NCBI GenBank assembly: GCA_965644315.1
Contig: CBFFRQ010000027.1
Span: 1 to 64,000, forward strand
Length of the DNA stretch: 64,000 nucleotides
Source of the DNA: Caecitellus pseudoparvulus
Taxonomy: Eukaryota; Protista; Bigyra: Bicosoecida
Direction: 5' to 3'
In this document: positions 1 to 11,524 of the stretch, piece after piece
How positions within the stretch are numbered: the first letter of the stretch is position 1
Layout: each line of letters opens with the position of its first letter
The notes under the pieces: model-generated
What the model saw: only the letters and a program-made list of their open reading frames with translations
Databases searched by the model: none
Told to the model about the DNA's origin: nothing
Position numbers and translations under genes: made by a program

Positions 1-235
1 CCATGCGCTTGGCACCCACATCATGTTGAGGCCGCGCCGCGGCTTGCTGGTGGCGCTTGCGTTCAAGGCGAGTAGTTCGAGCTTCTGAAGCCAGCCGCTC
101 CTGAACCTCACGAAGCCGTTGGACTTGTGCTTCTTTGTACGCCTTCATCCGCCTGCGACGACAATGGACCATATGGCCGCCAAGAGCTCGTTCGTCGTCG
201 AACTCCTTGTTGCAGAGCTTGCAGCGGGCGCTCAT
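1..235 (-). CDS. 5' end of a zinc-finger (C-x2-C-x12-H-x3-C) protein, possibly a transposase; runs off the left edge
   Basis: Manual translation from ATG at 235: MSARCKLCNKEFDDERALGGHMVHCRRRRMKAYKEAQVQRLREVQERL..., open to position 1. Not in the ORF track because it has no stop in the window. Confidence 0.7.
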   Translation of the reverse strand, partial: MSARCKLCNKEFDDERALGGHMVHCRRRRMKAYKEAQVQRLREVQERLASEARTTRLERKRHQQAAARPQHDVGAKRM

Positions 236-526
236 TCTGAGTCTTCTGTAGCGTGAGGGCACCGGCGGAGTTCCGTTGCTTGCGTTGGCGCCCCTACCGT
301 ACGTACGCAACGCGCACAGCGAGGCGAGAACGCAACACAATGCCAGGCAGCCGTAGCATCTTCATGTTGGTCGTTGGTGTGTGTTGGGCTGTGGGCATTG
401 AAGGCGCCTTGCAACCTCGTCCAGTGCATTTCCAGTCTGTCTCGACATTCCACCGTTGCATGTACTTTCAGACCCACCAAGTCCTCAGATACGCTTTTTG
501 TTGCACACCCACCCCAACCATTCACC

Positions 527-2569
527 ATGTCACTTCACTTTGATGAAATGGGCTCTGACAGCGAGGATGCAGGGGACACAACGGCAAGTGTCGTGGCTTC
601 GTTAAGTATCGCCACACCCCTCGAGGCTGCACACCTCTTCAACCGCAGCACGGCTGCCAAAGCTGTGATGGCCGGGAAACGTCGACGGGATGTTGTGCTT
701 TGGGCATCTCACCCTGGCAACTGCACTGGGTCCGTCGTTGGGGTGCCTGACGTTCTGGAGGGTAATGGTACGTACTGGTTCGCGCCACAGGATCGACGCC
801 CGTGCAGCGCCTCCCCACCCCACCCTAGCATCATGTGCAGGTGATGCCAACGCACTCACATGCCTTGATGACAGGGAGCTATTCGGCACAGCTAGGGGCG
901 GTTCTAGTGCTGCCATTGCGGCTCGTACGTACCTGCTCTGCAGTCACGGTAGCCACAGCGTTCTAACGGCCACTGCTAAGCTTCGTTGGACCGGACCAAT
1001 CCCGCTCCCCTTCCCCAGAAGCCTTCGCCGCAAATACAATGGCGAGCTGCAGACCGATCAAGGCACCAAGGCCGCTTGACCTTGCTGAGAAGCTTGAATC
1101 GGCGAAGGAGCTGCTTGAGTCTATTGGCACGCCCAGCGAGAAACGTCTCATCGAGTTGTTGAACGAGGTTTTCGTTTGGAGCGCAAACACCATGTCCCTT
1201 GTCCAACTCTCACTTGGCCTGGGGCAATTCAGAACTTCACAGGTAGTGGGTATGGTTGGTCCACTAACGCAGAAGCAGGAAGCAAAGAACTCCAAGAAAC
1301 GTGGAGCTCGTGGGGGAGACCAGCTGGGTGAACTCTTAGAGCCCGTGGGGGGCGCAGACTCAATCCCATGGCCCCGAAAGTTCAGGGCAGAAGCCCGCCG
1401 CATCGTGGTCGACCTCATCCTCGAGAACCCTTCGTTCATCTTGGCAGACCCCGAGAACCTGGTAGACACACTACGAGCAGCCATCGAGGCAGTTGAGGCC
1501 GAGCAGAACGTTGCCCGAGAGGTGGCTGGAGCCACAGAGGAAGGGGGAGATGGGGTGCCGGTTGGAGCACAAGCCACGAGCCGGGCTCTAGACGACCCTA
1601 GGTTCTCAGCACCGTGGAAGTTCAAATGCCTCGAAAACGTGATAGCAGCAGCGAGGAAGGTTTCGATACAGAAGGAGCTTACCGAGCGGGGTGGCGTGCT
1701 TTGCGCGCTGAAGGACATGGCGAAGAGCAGCAAGAGTGCGAGTTACGCCGGGCTGAAGGCCGCCATGAGCAATGTCAGGAGCAAGTGCCGCGCCAAAATC
1801 ACGAGGTGAGTGCCCAGAGGACTCCTTCCGAGTCCGTGGAGCGCAGCATAGCAGACTTCTGAGCATTGCGCAGTTCGGAATGCCTAGGAAAGTTCGAACC
1901 GTGGCACGAGATGCAGAGGAAGTACGAGCCAGTCCATGAGAAGTGCACCGGAGGTGCAAGCATTCAGCTTGACCACGACCCAGCCTTCTTCGAGGTGTCT
2001 TCCGAGGACCCTGAGTACCGCCACAGTTGGGTGCCCAAGGTAAGTATGTGTGTGAGTCTAGACCCGCACAGGTGATGCTGGGCCCGAATGCTCCTTTCTC
2101 ATGCATTCTCTTTGTGCCACAGGCTGAGAGGGGCAAAAAAAGGGCTGATCGATCAAGGCACCGCCTGTGCTTGCAGGAAGTCAACGTTGCCCGTGAGGCC
2201 ATCGTCAATCATACCACCATCAAGGCTGTTTTCAAACGCCGGGGATCCGAGGACTCCAGTAGCGGCCCCCGTTTCGACCCCAGCTTCAGGCGTTTGGAAG
2301 CGGCGCTCAGTGGCCCAGAAGATGTGGCAAAAGGGGCCAGGATTGTCTTACGATGGATGGAGGCTGCGTACAACGTTGCTGTCGACTGCTTGAACGTGAA
2401 GAACAAGCAGTGGGTGACTGATTGTGGGGACCTGAGCAGCCTGACCGTTGACGACAAGGTGCGTGCGTGCTGTATGTTGGCCATGCTGTGGACGTCGTTA
2501 CGCATGAAGCACCACGTACAGACGGAGATGGCCGTGCTTACGCACAAAATTGTGTCCAGGATAACCTGA
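527..2569 (+). CDS. Hypothetical protein, ~574 aa, 5 exons (527-767, 841-924, 1019-1805, 1874-2039, 2123-2569)
   Basis: Four GT-AG introns (donors gtacgt, gtacgt, gtgagt, gtaagt) join track ORFs 374, 690, 1039, 1866 and 2027 with consistent phases. No recognisable domain. Confidence 0.65.
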
Positions 2570-2684
2570 CATGCCCTCCCTCGACCTGGCGCCGAGCCAT
2601 CCGTGCTGAAGCTACTTCATTGTTCTTCAGGTTGTCAAGGTGTGTTTCAATGCAATCGATTCACGGCAGACCGAACTTGTTGCG

Positions 2685-2900
2685 CTAGCGAAGAATGTAC
2701 TACTAGGAAAAATGTCCAGCTGGGCGGTGCGCTAGTAGTGCGCTGGGCGGCCCTCCGTACTAGTAGCGCCTCGCCCAGCGAAATTTACTAGTACCGAGCA
2801 CAACCACCCCCGCTCACTAGTGTGCCTCTGGGCATGCATTCTCACTAGCATTGCAGTCGCCCCACTCACTTCACTAGCGCAAAATTGAGCTCTAGAAAAA
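2685..2900. repeat. Phased array of nine CTAG palindromes with variable spacers
   Basis: CTAG starts at 2685, 2703, 2732, 2760, 2788, 2817, 2845, 2874 and 2892 (spacings 18, 29, 28, 28, 29, 28, 29, 18). CTAG is sparse elsewhere in the window. Confidence 0.9.
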
Positions 2901-3387
2901 AAACACTCTTCAAACTCTCCTTACAGAGCGCGCTCAGGTGACGGATGGCCGGGTGCTTCCGAGACTGCTGCAGCATCAGTGCGCCCTTCAGCAGCACGAA
3001 TCACAGGACTGCATTGAAAACGTACCCTGTGTAGCTCGTGGGCGCTGGGAGCCTCGCCATTCGACTGCAAGGCCGTGCAACCACGTGCTCTTGCCCGAAC
3101 ATCGCACAGCGACATTTGCAGGGCAGAGCCGCGCAGGAAGTCAGAGGCCCTAAATCCGAACGCGCCAACAACGTCAAGCATCCCCAGCTTTTGTCAGCTT
3201 GTCGTGTCCATACAAGGTCACTTGCACCGTTTCGTTGCTCGACAAGTGCGCCGGCACCAGGGCAGGAGTCCGCGGCGCCCCACACCATCGGCGCGCCTGC
3301 AAAGCAAGAGCACTTCAGCTGAACAGCAGTGCTAGGCACACCCTGCTCTAGCAGCACAAGCCCCCATCTGCCCCTGCAAGGCAACAC

Positions 3388-5657
3388 ATGCCACTGGGCG
3401 TCTCCATGGCCTTGGCGAGCAACCCGGAGCCGGTGGAGAGCAGTGAGTGATGGCTGGCAAGGCATTTCCCCTGCCTCGGCTTCCTGCATGCGCTGCCACG
3501 CTTTCGCGGGCAACGTCAGCGCCCGCGACAGCACCAGCCCCCCTGCACGCACATCTTCATGTGCTGTGCGCAGTCCCCAGCTCTCACCCTCCCACGCCGC
3601 GGCGGCAGGGCAAGGGGGGGGCGCCGAGCGGCAGCAGCAGCACGCCAAGGCAGCCTGCTGCTGCTAGCAAGCGTCAGGTGCAGTCAGGCAGCCAGGGCTC
3701 AGTGCGCGTTGGCGTGTGGCAGGGGAGCCTGTGTGCTGTCAAACAGTACAACGAGGGACAGGACCGGGCGTGGGCTGTGGAGGTGAACGCTGTGAGTGCT
3801 GCGCAGGCAGAGAGCTGGCTGGTCTGCCCCGGACGATGGCAACACCTTCCCCCGCCTTCCGCAGGCCACTGTCATCGCAAACCGCCACGCGCACATCATG
3901 GTGTTCTACCAGTGCTCCCAGGGGGCAGATGGGAAGCTGGTGCACTGTGAGTTGGCCCTCCTGGACGCCTTCGACTTCTACAAGTCCTCCCACATCAAAG
4001 GGTGAGTGCATGCGCTGGAGGGCGTTTCGCACGTTCGACGCACGGCAAGTGCCGTCCCACCCGCTCCACTTCGACAGGTTGCGGCAGTACTCCTTCATCC
4101 GCGAGTGGATGCTGCAAATCGCCCACGCCCTCTCCTTCCTGCACGAAGCGCGCGTGGCCCACAGAGATGGTGTGTTGCACTGAGCCAGCTTGTGTACATC
4201 AGTGGCGCATGCAACACCTGCATCACACTGCCCCGCCCTGCCCGCTGCCCCCCCTCGCAGTCAAGCCAGAGAACATCTTGATCGTCCCTAAGACAGCAGG
4301 CGCGGCCAGCCAGCGCCTGCCAGAAGGCGCACACGAACAGTACAGGGCACTGCAAGCCGAGCTGCGAGAAACGGCAGGCCAGCTTTCCGTTGCCCCCGAC
4401 ACCGCCAGCCAGCGCCTGCACGACTACATGGCCAAGCTGTGTGACTTTGGCTCTGCTTTTGTCGCCAGTGTTGAGTCCCGGGACCGCAAGGTGCCGCTGA
4501 AAGACCTGCCCGGGCGCACGCCACGCGGCTCGTCCAAGTACGCCTGCCCCATGGTGTGCTGGATGCACTTGGCCCGCGTGGAGGAGGCCACTGTGGCCGG
4601 CATATGGGAGGCGGGTGTGCCGGTGCCGCCACTGTTCAAGGACGGCTACAACCCCTTCGCTGCCGACGTGTGGAGTTACGGCGTGACGGTCTTCGTGCTG
4701 GCTTCGGGGCGGCACCCCTTCCGCATGGCCCACGTCAAGGACAAGGGTTTCCGGGCCTTCGTGCGCAGCACACAGCCTCACAGCATGCAGGACCAGGCTG
4801 TCCTGGCGCCGGGCGCGGCCATTTGGGAGGACTCCCCCAACTTGGCGTGGATGTGGCCGCCGGGCGTGTCCCAGGGCCTCGCGCACTTGCTGCTCAAATG
4901 CCTGACCGTCGACCTGGACCAGCGCTGGACCATGGCACAGGTGCAGCAGCACCCCTGGTTTGGCGACCCGCACTGGCTGCCCCCTGAGGGTGTGCCTGCC
5001 TACCCTCACACCGGCCCCGTCACCCCCTTCGGCAGCTTCGGCCCAGGCACCAACGGCGGCGAGACATCCACCGCCCCGCCCAGCACACACGAGGGCAGCC
5101 TGGCCACACTCAGCACTGCCCGCCCGATGAAAGGCTACGACGAAGCCTCCACCGGTGCGCGCAGCTACCTGCCTGGATATGCCGGCTCGCTGCCTTCCCT
5201 GGCAGGGGGCGCGACGCCGTTTGAGGACAGGACTCCGCAGAACCAGTGGGAGGAAGGGGAGGACCAGCTGCGCTCGGACACGCCCCCTGATCATGGGGAT
5301 GAGGTGGACTTGCCGCCCCTGACGATGCGGGATTCCGTCACGGCAGCTGCCGGGGCGGGGGGCGGGGCAGGAGTGCTGCGGCCCATGCAACGGGCAGTCC
5401 GCTCAAGGTCCAGCCCCGCCAAAGCCCGGTCCCCCCTTGCAGAGGGAGTCAAGGGCGCCTCTGGCAACCGCAGTCCCCTGGCCAGGGGGGGCGAGGGCGG
5501 GCTGGGCGGCAAGTACCGCGTCTCCGTGCAGCGTGGCAACAAGGACACGACGCACGTCGGCCCAGAGGCGTTGGCCCGCCTGGTTCGCAGCCAGGGAAAG
5601 GGCGGGATGGAGCAGCCTGGGATCGTGCACTCAGCGCCACAGTCCGCAAACGCGTGA
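3388..5657 (+). CDS. Ser/Thr protein kinase, 5 exons (3388-3442, 3574-3791, 3865-4001, 4078-4169, 4261-5657)
   Basis: Spliced product has SGSQGSV (Gly loop), CAVK, HRDVKPEN, KLCDFG, DVWSYGV and QHPWF, then a disordered tail. The first exon is the least certain. Confidence 0.92.
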
Positions 5658-9600: not shown

Positions 9601-11524
9601 TGAGGAGACGATGCAAAGCATGCTCGCGTACAGGCCTGTGGATGTGCCTGCCCAGCCCCCGCAGCCTCCTCCCCCCACTGCGTTTAACGCATTCGAACCG
9701 CCGCCCGCCGATCCGTACCAGCAGTCCCTGCTGCCCTGCACGTGGTTTGAGCGCCACAAAGTGCGAGACATGACTGGGCGTATGACACGATATGGACGAG
9801 GTGCCATCGGCGGCAGCGGGGACGCGTTCAAGAGTGCCTTTCAGCAGGTGACGACGCCGCAGCCGAGGGTGGGGGCGGACGGCCAGCCGCTGGAGGAAGA
9901 CGTGGCTGCAGCCATGGACATCATAGAGTCGGCTCGCGTGGCGGTGTCCTCGGGGCAGGAGAGCCTTGATGCAGACGCCCTGTGGCAGCAGGTGCTGGGG
10001 CAATTGACCAACGAGTTCACAGCTCCCAGCGGCAAGTTCGGGCCGCGCGGTGGCGAGTGGCTGCCAGCGACCGAGCTGCCGAGCCACGTCGCCGCTGTGT
10101 CGTCCTCCCTCAGGCGCAATGTCACAGCGCAAGGCACGGTGCGCCTGCCCACTCCTCAGGGCATTGTGGAGGTGCCTGAGGACGTGCATGCGGCAGCGTT
10201 GCTGGCAGCGGGGTGGGTGCCACCTCCCCCCACGCAAGACACGCGACCCCTGCTGGCACCAGACCCATCAGCCCCCCCCACCGCTCCTGGCTCGCCACCC
10301 TCACCCCCTGCATCGAAGGCAGAGCCAGCAGCCGCGTGGCTGCAGCTCGCATCGCCCAGCGGCCAGCCCAGTCAGCAGCCGGAACACGGCAGCAAGTCCC
10401 CCCTTCTCAAGTACAGTGCTGACGGTGTGCCGGAAAAACCGCCCAAGACTGCCTCCCCGGCCGTCAAGGCTGCCTACCGAGCCGAAATGTTCGCAAACAA
10501 GCCCCAGACCTTCGAGCGTTTTGGCTCCGAGTGGTTGCAGGGCAAAGTCGACCGCCTCGCCGACGAGCCGTTCGAAGCCGACACAGTGCGGCGCGGGCAG
10601 TTGCTGGAAGCAGCGTTGGCAGAGGCGCTGGCTGGCGGCCTTCCAGGGGCAGGGCAGTGGGCGCGCATCATTCGCCACCCACGCAAGAACAAGAAGCACG
10701 TCATCCTGGACGTCTGCACACCACAAGGCACGCTGGAACGCCGTGTCGTGTCCAAAGCCCGCACGACGTGGCGCTTCCCCGGCGCATACCGAGCAGCACG
10801 CAAGGCCACATGGGGAGGGCTGTGGCCGAATTGGATCGCCCGCGTGGAGGACAAGACTGCTGCAGCCCTTGCGAGGCGAGCCCGCAAAGACCGTGCAGCC
10901 GCGCAGCTTGCCGCTTCACATCGCCAGAACAGCCTGCCTGGCTCGGAAGCGAGTTCTGCAGATAGCACCTCCATCGTGCCGCAAACGCGCCGCTCTGGCG
11001 GCCTCATGCCCATGACACGGTCAACAGCTGAACGCAGAGCGGCGCGGGCCATGGACACCCCCCGCCTTCTTGCAGTTGCTGCGGAGGAGCTGCAGCAGGT
11101 CGCAGCCGCCGAGGGCCGCCCGTTGCGCCCAGAAGAAGCAGCTGTTGTGGCTGTCGCGGCAGACCCGTCATCCCTCCCCTCAGGCGCGCTGGAGAGCACT
11201 GCTGCAGGGCCTCTTGGCGGCTCCCTGACCACCACCCAAGACGCTGTGCGTGCTGTGGCGGCGCTGAGGCGGCAGCGTGGCGGGCCTGCCGGGGAGTCTG
11301 CGCCCGACCCAGCATTCGCACGCCACACGGCACGAGCCCAGCGACACAGGCAAGCTGCCAAAGCTGCTTCCATGGCGAAAGCTGCTCCCTCGTCGCCACC
11401 GGCTGTCGTCATGCGCGAATTGCGAGACATGGGGGTGCTGGGGTCAAGCAGGGGCGCCGCGGCCAAGCGTGCGGCGCGGGAGGCGGTGCTTGCCAAGCGC
11501 AAGAGGGGCGCCCACAAGCGATGA
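6614..11524 (+). CDS. RSM22: Mitoribosome small-subunit assembly factor, Rsm22/METTL17-like methyltransferase fold, with very large insertions
   Basis: Arg/Ala-rich transit-peptide-like N-terminus; MLDVGSGTG, VEPSRSM, YDLVVAQHTLSEL, PGGVLVIADKG, GPCPHALACP, WARIIRHPRKNKKHVILDVC and YRAARKATWG in family order. Confidence 0.9.
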   Translation: MASFSRVPRAHAALAAMPGVRVLRKLGPRLLQGTARHCALPSVIGEAGLKQSHRHMSSSSFPGIDEDDGGFGELLKELSSAEPTSARHTALDGEAELLHAVPENAGLDPADDDVGVADAQFLRRWRDIFADRERTAVKARHNPYVPFSAGADASPAAPPEKLVRGIDSILAGRNVANIKAHWRDMSASLQQRNADLLKSVQGASGRHAGVASRRQAANMPGHAVHGPGESAPLLYGPRETLAFTLHRTLPLFGVAATLFREVAESLPSWTPRTMLDVGSGTGAAIWAAREVWSGPDKAGAEAHATVGSALAAAAAGADAATALGKGGVLQEIVAVEPSRSMQQVSEHLLHDVPGVVFRRSLADVERTVAGSTRGSLGVYDLVVAQHTLSELTSERERADMTARLWELVAPGGVLVIADKGTRWGFHVVGSAREGLLTRMTVKEQVQRSQKGHTLPLDPTLPALPTPSEAAKALLAEGGSRGVSLPLDAGTGPTVHDEGEVDSAELLAALQGEGGVAEPVEGSSAYYAPTAHLVPDTDEPGRQVLAIKDTSGNIPSDADWGTVPGTQSHATGAPPADGPGTTGRRKRRAAQRTPEAVRPTPSVSESQQPTAQARGSVSLTDTRPGAKAQQVDVTAQANAAAAARAGLAPTASSVLPGADAASAPGAFAAAQAAQAELVASLQAAGQVGLQGGSDLASRSQALAAQSAGGEGVSLAAQCAARRSGPAPTSRRKQASLASTVGRLAKVGTALDDTGAAVIGPCPHALACPVRAAAASSNTKADFCTMGRVVNTHKASTAKQHRRTLPTAVERYAYITLRKTDDASRWQHPPATRAGHTLFASAFEHQAEKWHQNAVALPAAASVLAQEEATAVSRGRAMWLATFRDRALAVEAQDAAAARTGEATRALEHDEDGRALLPPLPDSSDSSDSSDSTDAAGSGSSSESDDEVSPFSAVDATNRSGLSQEVAQAGALAQRAVSGGDDLDVVQLLQDVQHPYEDEETMQSMLAYRPVDVPAQPPQPPPPTAFNAFEPPPADPYQQSLLPCTWFERHKVRDMTGRMTRYGRGAIGGSGDAFKSAFQQVTTPQPRVGADGQPLEEDVAAAMDIIESARVAVSSGQESLDADALWQQVLGQLTNEFTAPSGKFGPRGGEWLPATELPSHVAAVSSSLRRNVTAQGTVRLPTPQGIVEVPEDVHAAALLAAGWVPPPPTQDTRPLLAPDPSAPPTAPGSPPSPPASKAEPAAAWLQLASPSGQPSQQPEHGSKSPLLKYSADGVPEKPPKTASPAVKAAYRAEMFANKPQTFERFGSEWLQGKVDRLADEPFEADTVRRGQLLEAALAEALAGGLPGAGQWARIIRHPRKNKKHVILDVCTPQGTLERRVVSKARTTWRFPGAYRAARKATWGGLWPNWIARVEDKTAAALARRARKDRAAAQLAASHRQNSLPGSEASSADSTSIVPQTRRSGGLMPMTRSTAERRAARAMDTPRLLAVAAEELQQVAAAEGRPLRPEEAAVVAVAADPSSLPSGALESTAAGPLGGSLTTTQDAVRAVAALRRQRGGPAGESAPDPAFARHTARAQRHRQAAKAASMAKAAPSSPPAVVMRELRDMGVLGSSRGAAAKRAAREAVLAKRKRGAHKR

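Follow-up and report, generated by a model that had tools for sequence, protein, structure and literature searches.

A phased CTAG array in Caecitellus pseudoparvulus as the likely subterminal repeat region of a Plavaka-related DNA transposon

An array of nine CTAG sites in the genome of Caecitellus pseudoparvulus is probably the subterminal repeat region at one end of an active cut-and-paste transposon, which belongs to a new Plavaka-related lineage of the CMCT clade (CACTA/EnSpm-Mirage-Chapaev-Transib). The array is located near the start of the window, the stretch of 64,000 nucleotides that was analysed (contig CBFFRQ010000027.1, positions 1 to 64,000, forward strand). The analysis defines, for this marine protist, a lineage of active DNA transposons that had not been recognised before, with its boundaries, target site duplication, genes and a non-autonomous sister family. 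The first-pass annotation, made without database searches, had described the array as the best candidate for an undescribed system in this DNA. This assessment was overstated, as the array is better read as transposon subterminal repeats, an ordinary kind of feature in an undescribed active lineage. The unusual trait is the strict pitch at one end, which is apparently conserved while the motif changes.

Structure of the CTAG array

The nine CTAG sites start at window positions 2685, 2703, 2732, 2760, 2788, 2817, 2845, 2874 and 2892, and the spacings given by the first-pass annotation were reproduced exactly, with 18-29-28-28-29-28-29-18 bp from core to core. The seven inner cores follow a period of 28-29 bp, and a core doublet of 18 bp is found at either edge. 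CTAG is under-represented 4.6-fold in the window, which has a G+C content of 66 % (44 occurrences seen vs 202 expected), and the Poisson probability for nine CTAG within 216 bp is ~1e-14. When the inner sites were placed at random 2,000,000 times, the six central intervals never agreed to within 1 bp. The CTAG array is not a chance product. Further depleted tetranucleotides in the window are TATA (2 seen, 55 expected), TTAA (9 seen, 55 expected), CCGG and CGCG; TGCA and CATG are enriched across it.

Tandem Repeats Finder reported no repeat in the array region. Therefore, the spacers are truly dissimilar, and the view that this is not an ordinary tandem repeat is upheld. The finer resemblances within the array were also recovered. 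Positions 2719-2742 match the reverse complement of 2756-2779 at 20/24 positions, the modules at the two ends of the array agree at 20/30, and spacers 85 bp apart share a similarity that is modest (0.41, p ~0.025 with the cores held fixed). A G-rich mid-spacer motif, CTGGGC/GCCCAG, recurs in the array in both orientations and is only loosely kept in the sister family described below. The distance to the upstream orphan gene, given as about 115 bp, was likewise found: its TGA ends at 2569, and the first CTAG follows 116 bp on. A search against Rfam yielded no match for the array.

Boundaries of the element and target site duplication

The array had been assigned to a putative mobile element, and this is borne out by a shared end, differing flanks, 2-bp duplications and an empty site. 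Since the copies share their sequence up to position 2944 and then diverge in the flanks, the array lies inside the end of a repeated element, 45 bp from the right terminus and with the element body to its left (Table 1). The full extent was obtained from a walk along contig C15 (locus L044) and a genome search, which gave a cut-and-paste DNA transposon of 6,848 bp. The contig of the window (C27) begins inside this element, and the rest of the same insertion is located on C15 (L044).

The perfect part of the terminal inverted repeat consists of the last 7 bp, GTGACGG (2938-2944). The far end of the element reads CCGTCACTGGAGG... and opens with CCGTCAC, so that the two ends share the perfect heptamer CCGTCAC/GTGACGG. 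An imperfect inverted repeat of ~60 bp extends between the ends (43/68 columns, p = 0.0045 vs shuffles). Direct repeats of 2 bp occur at copies for which both flanks are available, namely AT/AT (C69) and CG/CG (C102). Alignment of contigs of four other runs to window positions 1-4500 revealed an empty site in run X4, a marine metagenome, as ...GGCGGGCC-AT-GGCCGGG..., which has AT once, and the occupied site has AT on both sides. Therefore, the duplication is AT and the boundaries are exact. The X4 sequence before 2945 is the reverse complement of the far-end flank on C15 with one mismatch. It also follows from the empty site that C15:1-6832 and window positions 1-2944 are one insertion that was assembled twice.

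Other types of repeat were considered and rejected. A giant element with 2.9-kb inverted repeats had come into question because both ends of C15 carry the array and because breaks occur in four contigs ~2,930-2,946 bp inside the element. This was ruled out, as the element measures 6.85 kb and C15:8134-9960 is a host-like sterol-sensing gene. A telomere-linked repeat was ruled out because the contig ends are without telomere repeats. Helitrons have neither inverted termini nor a target duplication, end in 5'-TC..CTRR-3' and encode a Rep/helicase protein. A Helitron 3' end was ruled out by the inverted termini, the 2-bp duplication and the DDE-type transposase; the hairpin at 2719-2792 stands 150 bp from the element end.

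Table 1. Features of the element in the window
Feature	Position	Strand	Basis
Right-hand 2,944 bp of one transposon copy	1-2944		100 % matches at 12 loci, all ending at ~2944
First exon of the transposase (ATG at 235-233) with C2H2-type zinc finger; continues beyond the contig start	1-235	-	Sequence, Pfam
Intergenic region between the divergent genes; presumed shared promoter	236-526		Gene orientation only
Multi-exon orphan gene, reading towards the array; candidate TnpA-like accessory DNA-binding protein	527-2569	+	GT-AG introns
Subterminal array of nine CTAG cores, mostly ACTAG[T/C]	2685-2895		Site positions, randomization, sister-family conservation
Imperfect palindrome over the left array half; symmetry partners 2703/2788 and 2732/2760	2700-2795		ssDNA fold, 20/24 inverted match
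Terminal 49 bp: A-run, then terminus ...CAGGTGACGG	2896-2944		Common to all copies
Target site duplication AT	2945-2946		Empty site in run X4

Genes and classification of the transposase

Both element genes read outwards to the ends. The transposase is a DDE enzyme of ~1,100 amino acids, which continues on C15 as two long ORFs, and its first exon has a Pfam match to zf-C2H2_6 below the threshold (E = 4e-4). The pieces of the transposase ORF were searched individually with unjoined exons. Under these conditions, neither the transposase ORFs nor the orphan gene matched when ten element ORFs were searched against Pfam, again at E <= 10, and no recombinase family was found in the ORFs of the 6.8-kb element. 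Word-indexed protein searches with the element proteins and profile searches against the PDB returned nothing, nor did JGI metagenome contigs when scanned with 30-mers and at the protein level. The AlphaFold models were poor, both with a pLDDT of 40-42, and the low-confidence model of the orphan protein is helical.

An exhaustive HMMER search of 1.84 billion representatives found five relatives only, four of which have 739-1,155 amino acids and 26-35 % identity. The alignments of the transposase contain an invariant D in FMDE, followed by SxD..EAW, Cys motifs, H(3)H (KAHEIQH) and DTDxGE. The ORFs of the element contribute SADMVEAW..CVQC, then KAHEIQH, then DTDNGE, and H237, H241, D258 and E261 are invariant in 5 sequences. 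The CMCT clade is defined by C(2)C and H(3-4)H motifs and by duplications of 2-5 bp (PMC12730594). In the transposase, this signature of the CACTA-Plavaka-Transib group appears as C(2)C / H(3)H, and the 2-bp duplication is within the range of the clade. CMCT termini are 5'-CA..TG-3' 'in most cases' (PMC12730594). Such ends were not found here, as the termini are CCGTCAC..GTGACGG with CAC at positions 5-7, not at position 1.

One of the relatives, P0002, has a Pfam match to Plavaka (PF18759) over the homologous region with E = 6.7e-5 and 22.7 bits, which is under the cut-off of 26.3, and the protein atlas gave a weak Plavaka hint for the transposase with a score of 0.92. Because of the motifs, the duplication and the sub-threshold match of P0002, and despite termini other than CA..TG, the element is most likely a new Plavaka-like lineage of the CMCT clade; it is not claimed as Plavaka itself. 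An assignment to hAT, prompted by the zinc finger, was ruled out by the 2-bp duplication, which is 8 bp in hAT, and by the Cys/His motifs.

Copies, variation and recent activity

The host genome comprises 30.6 Mb in 215 contigs, has GT-AG introns and is also found in marine metagenomes. A 361-bp query covering the array matched 12 loci at 100 %, one at 84 % and eight at ~69 %. Past position 2944, seven of the 12 identical loci run into seven unrelated flanks. An initial copy number of at least 12 was corrected by the empty site and matching flank dinucleotides: five loci at contig ends duplicate insertions already counted at five loci with flanks, and the real number is ~8. Chains of the form CTAG-N24/25-CTAG-N24/25-CTAG, a search proposed by the first-pass annotation, have 80 hits in the genome, all of them in these element families (21 loci), vs 3 for a control pattern.

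Copy counts in the assembly are inflated, as it holds the same insertions twice. This concerns C15/C27, the pair of the window, and also C15/C36, C63/C200 and C19/C51. In this pattern, one contig stops 16 bp before the array terminus is reached, and the partner contig starts 2.9 kb inside the element. The copy on C19 carries a 4.4-kb insertion (G000 C19:474701-479112) in the first transposase exon at element position L044:2940-2946. The query ranges overlap by 8 bp there, possibly an 8-bp duplication from another transposon. Four contigs, including that of the window, break at this point, probably because the assembly graph branches there.

The array is fixed within the element, with the same sequence in every copy and in other strains. 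A change in the order or orientation of the spacers between copies, which the first-pass annotation had suggested to look for, was not seen: one arrangement is present in all copies and in the contigs of the other runs. The stretch 1967-2882, which includes the array, has 0 differences in runs X3 and X4. In these runs the element has 0-1 differences over 2.9 kb, and the host flank differs by 3-4 %. A near-identical element (window positions 1-2944) next to diverged host flanks (2945-4500) was observed in runs X3, X4 and X8. In addition, other flanks follow position 2944 in runs X4 and X8. Since the element is near-identical where host flanks are diverged, and since the flanks differ, the element appears to be recent and active in natural populations. 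The near-identity across samples suggests either activity in the very recent past or spreading from one diverged strain to another. An element that is identical where the host DNA differs by 3-4 % would thus be moving or spreading in natural populations. In run X6, one contig with a depth of 104 of ~1,250 skips 90 bp inside the array, from 2712 to 2803. This unverified skip may reflect a deletion, a divergent copy or, as the run is noisy, an artefact.

Sister family and conservation of the cores

The array was aligned with the copy at 84 % and with the eight copies at 69 %, which include the sister family. Cores 1-7 are invariant in 28/28 columns compared to 68 % of the other array columns (P ~1.8e-5), with the caveat that the cores in part served as anchors for this alignment. 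Every spacer has a counterpart with positional homology in the sister family, where the spacings are 28, 28, 30, 29 and 28 bp, and blocks adjacent to the cores are conserved, e.g. ATGCATTCTCACTAG. The alignment indicates that selection keeps the cores and roughly the spacing while the spacers drift.

The transposase is missing from the 3.4-kb members of the sister family, which retain the two ends and an orphan gene homologue. The homologue is found at the same place with 40-70 % amino acid identity, and in-frame stops occur in three of four sister-family copies. In the copy on C44 (G000 C44:140497-152380), the transposase region is 86 % identical to the family described here, and the ends and the orphan gene are ~69 % identical. 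This split indicates a joint divergence of the ends and the orphan gene, at a higher rate than that of the transposase. The C44 copy is a long sister-family mosaic with ~5 kb of extra DNA before the far end.

The far end and the nearest distinct relative

The far end of the element (L044:6478-6808) contains 11 CACTAG[T/C] motifs, all of which point to the far terminus. Their spacings are irregular, with 18, 43, 29, 18, 44, 40, 17, 42, 30 and 49 bp. The TCACTAG cores at 2817, 2845 and 2874 in the array point to the terminus at 2944. Thus, the (C)ACTAG motif is common to both ends in inverted orientation, and the pitch is regular at one end only. Core doublets of 17-18 bp have five occurrences over both ends. 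A test of whether the far-end spacings share the helical phase of the array was marginal (p ~0.03-0.05). According to the first-pass annotation, arrays that are identical in all copies and mirrored at the other end would represent an ordinary subterminal repeat. The identity is confirmed; the mirror holds for the motif, which is the same and inverted, but not for the spacing.

The metagenomic contig L046 encodes P0002, which is the nearest distinct relative of the transposase with 35 % identity. This contig contains a 29-bp tandem repeat of 8.3 units with 91 % matches at 143-383, whose CGTGAGGTGG-like sub-sites are alternately 13 and 16 bp apart. The repeat begins ~85 bp inside the only CCGTCAC of the contig (L046:56) and lies on the same side of the transposase gene. 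It therefore has the heptamer, the side, the 29-bp period and the number of ~8 units in common with the element in the window. In contrast, its repeats are direct and have no CTAG core, there is no orphan gene between array and transposase, and its terminus is deduced from a single contig. As a 29-bp repeat is present at CCGTCAC in L046, the period and the terminal heptamer look like properties of the family level, while the motif differs. A gene of 199 amino acids called over the L046 repeat (59-658) is probably spurious.

Proposed function of the array

The first-pass annotation had offered subterminal protein-binding repeats as its most conservative reading. The location 45 bp from the terminus, the invariance and the presence of the motif at the other end support repeats of an element end, and we infer that the cores are protein docking sites. 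The short cores would serve as candidate docking sites for a protein encoded by the element itself, which could be the transposase with its N-terminal C2H2 finger, the product of the orphan gene in a role like that of TnpA in maize, or both. With numerous weak sites at a fixed pitch of 28-29 bp, an oligomer might bind cooperatively. Once bound, such an oligomer could mark this end as distinct and pair the ends for cleavage at CCGTCAC/GTGACGG. In a more specific form of this model, the conserved transposase finger would read the ACTAG cores, and the fast-evolving orphan protein would read the mid-spacer motif CTGGGC/GCCCAG. As CTAG is rare in the genome, ACTAG sites would meet few competitors in the host DNA.

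Several observations count against the docking-site model. The pitch of 28.5 bp corresponds to 2.7 helical turns, so that neighbouring sites of the array do not face the same side of the helix. The irregular far end and the loss of the last two cores in the sister family also count against it. The strict pitch combined with free spacers, which is kept in distant relatives, offers a natural case for studying how transposases measure and tell apart the two ends of an element.

Alternative explanations

The first alternative is structural. At the end of the transposon, the array could be extruded as an extended, imperfect hairpin or cruciform that serves in cleavage or replication, and would not act through separate binding sites. 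The ssDNA fold of window positions 2675-2944 is better than all 200 shuffles (z = -3.65), the left half of the array is an imperfect palindrome of ~95 bp, and the inner inverted match around GCGCTAG / CTAGTAGCGC is retained in the sister family, where it is even better. However, palindromic cores and inverted pairs of binding sites yield the same signal, and no such symmetry exists in the right array half or at the far end. The repeats of L046 are purely direct, and the three lineages at hand are too few for a covariation test. Taken together, a structural role in place of binding sites is unlikely.

Slightly less probable still is a barrier at the edge of the element, in which the array would be the 3' UTR and terminator of the orphan gene and would block transcription or translation between host and element through TAG stops in all frames on both strands. 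The position of the array 116 bp downstream of the orphan stop and the outward reading of both genes fit this idea. CTAG holds TAG on both strands, and a pitch of 28/29 bp rotates through all frames. Furthermore, TnpA bound to the subterminal repeats of En/Spm blocks RNA polymerase (PMC2613891). Stop codons, however, need neither a fixed pitch nor conserved flanks such as CACTAG, and the 29-bp repeat of L046 has no stop-codon core.

The array could also be an old tandem duplication with a unit of 28-29 bp or 85 bp, which has drifted without a function and kept its CTAG cores by chance. The weak similarity at a shift of 85 bp would agree with this, as would the young 29-bp tandem repeat at the same position in L046. 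Against it, a divergence of 31 % has altered the spacers and left the cores invariant, the pitch varies by no more than 1-2 bp, and the far end is enriched in the same motif. Decay is therefore about as improbable as the barrier.

The remaining proposals of the first-pass annotation, invertible mini-cassettes or a repeat-spacer array giving ~28-nt RNAs, are scarcely credible: they have only the outward form in their favour (short palindromes, fixed pitch, dissimilar spacers), whereas no rearranged version was seen in any copy or in the contigs of the four other runs, a comparison at contig level in which rare variants are possible, the spacers are homologous by position in diverged families, and neither a recombinase gene in the element nor an Rfam match was found. 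A shufflon-type system was rejected on account of the single arrangement and the missing recombinase family. A CRISPR-like array was rejected because the 'repeat' is limited to a core of 4-8 bp, because the spacers do not vary between copies and are homologous to those of diverged families, and because the host is a eukaryote with spliced genes.

Comparison with known transposons

Among known systems, the subterminal repeats of CACTA (En/Spm) elements resemble those described here, as short motifs in direct and inverted orientation lie within a few hundred bp of both asymmetric ends. TnpA binds the En/Spm subterminal repeats, and such proteins and repeats diversify together (PMC2613891). CACTA elements combine a conserved transposase with a fast-evolving accessory protein that has no detectable similarity between families (PMC2613891). 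The element described here also has two proteins, and its ends and accessory gene diverge together. In contrast to CACTA, the two proteins come from two divergent genes and not from alternative splicing, the motif is a palindromic core of 4-8 bp and not a 12-bp motif, and one end has a strict pitch of 28-29 bp. The duplication of 2 bp and the termini CCGTCAC..GTGACGG, instead of CACTA..TAGTG, are further differences.

Target duplications of Plavaka elements are 2 bp (PlavakaA) or 2-3 bp (PlavakaB) (PMC12730594). The 2-bp duplication and the sub-threshold Pfam match in the catalytic region of P0002 are in line with Plavaka. However, the ORFs of the element itself have no Pfam Plavaka match, the termini of Plavaka are TGT..ACA or CATCA..TGATG, and the host is a marine GC-rich protist, unlike the hosts of fungal Plavaka. 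A phased subterminal array is not mentioned for Plavaka in PMC12730594, a text in which the word 'subterminal' is absent.

In the Hermes octamer, several BED fingers bind one transposon end asymmetrically (PMC10368747). Many short subterminal repeats and an N-terminal zinc finger in the transposase are shared with this hAT element, and here both the oligomer and the binding are predicted only. Hermes belongs to a different superfamily, since hAT makes 8-bp duplications.

Possible conservation of the pitch in related elements

A more speculative reading concerns the pitch itself. The lineage may use a 'ruler' at one end, consisting of ~8 units with a pitch of 28-29 bp at CCGTCAC, which would be kept at 35 % protein identity while the motif turns over (ACTAG and CTGGGC vs CGTGAGGTGG). 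This is a tentative possibility, and the odds are rather against it. If true, selection would keep the geometry of a protein filament or ring and not the DNA words, and the orphan gene would encode an array-binding partner of a new, unrecognisable class, in co-evolution with the spacers. On the DNA available for L047 and L050, the contigs of further relatives, no phased array was found, which counts against the docking-site model above.

Both contigs contain divergent accessory genes for 427-453 amino acids that adjoin the transposase (L047:730-2091 and L050:3785-5068). The two accessory proteins are homologous to each other with 28 % identity (E = 1.6e-12); no Pfam family and no detectable similarity to the orphan gene were found for them. 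At the end of contig L050, a stretch of 75 bp (10421-10495) starts with CCGTCAC and finishes with GTGACGG. This stretch may represent the two ends of a related element, either joined or in miniature form.
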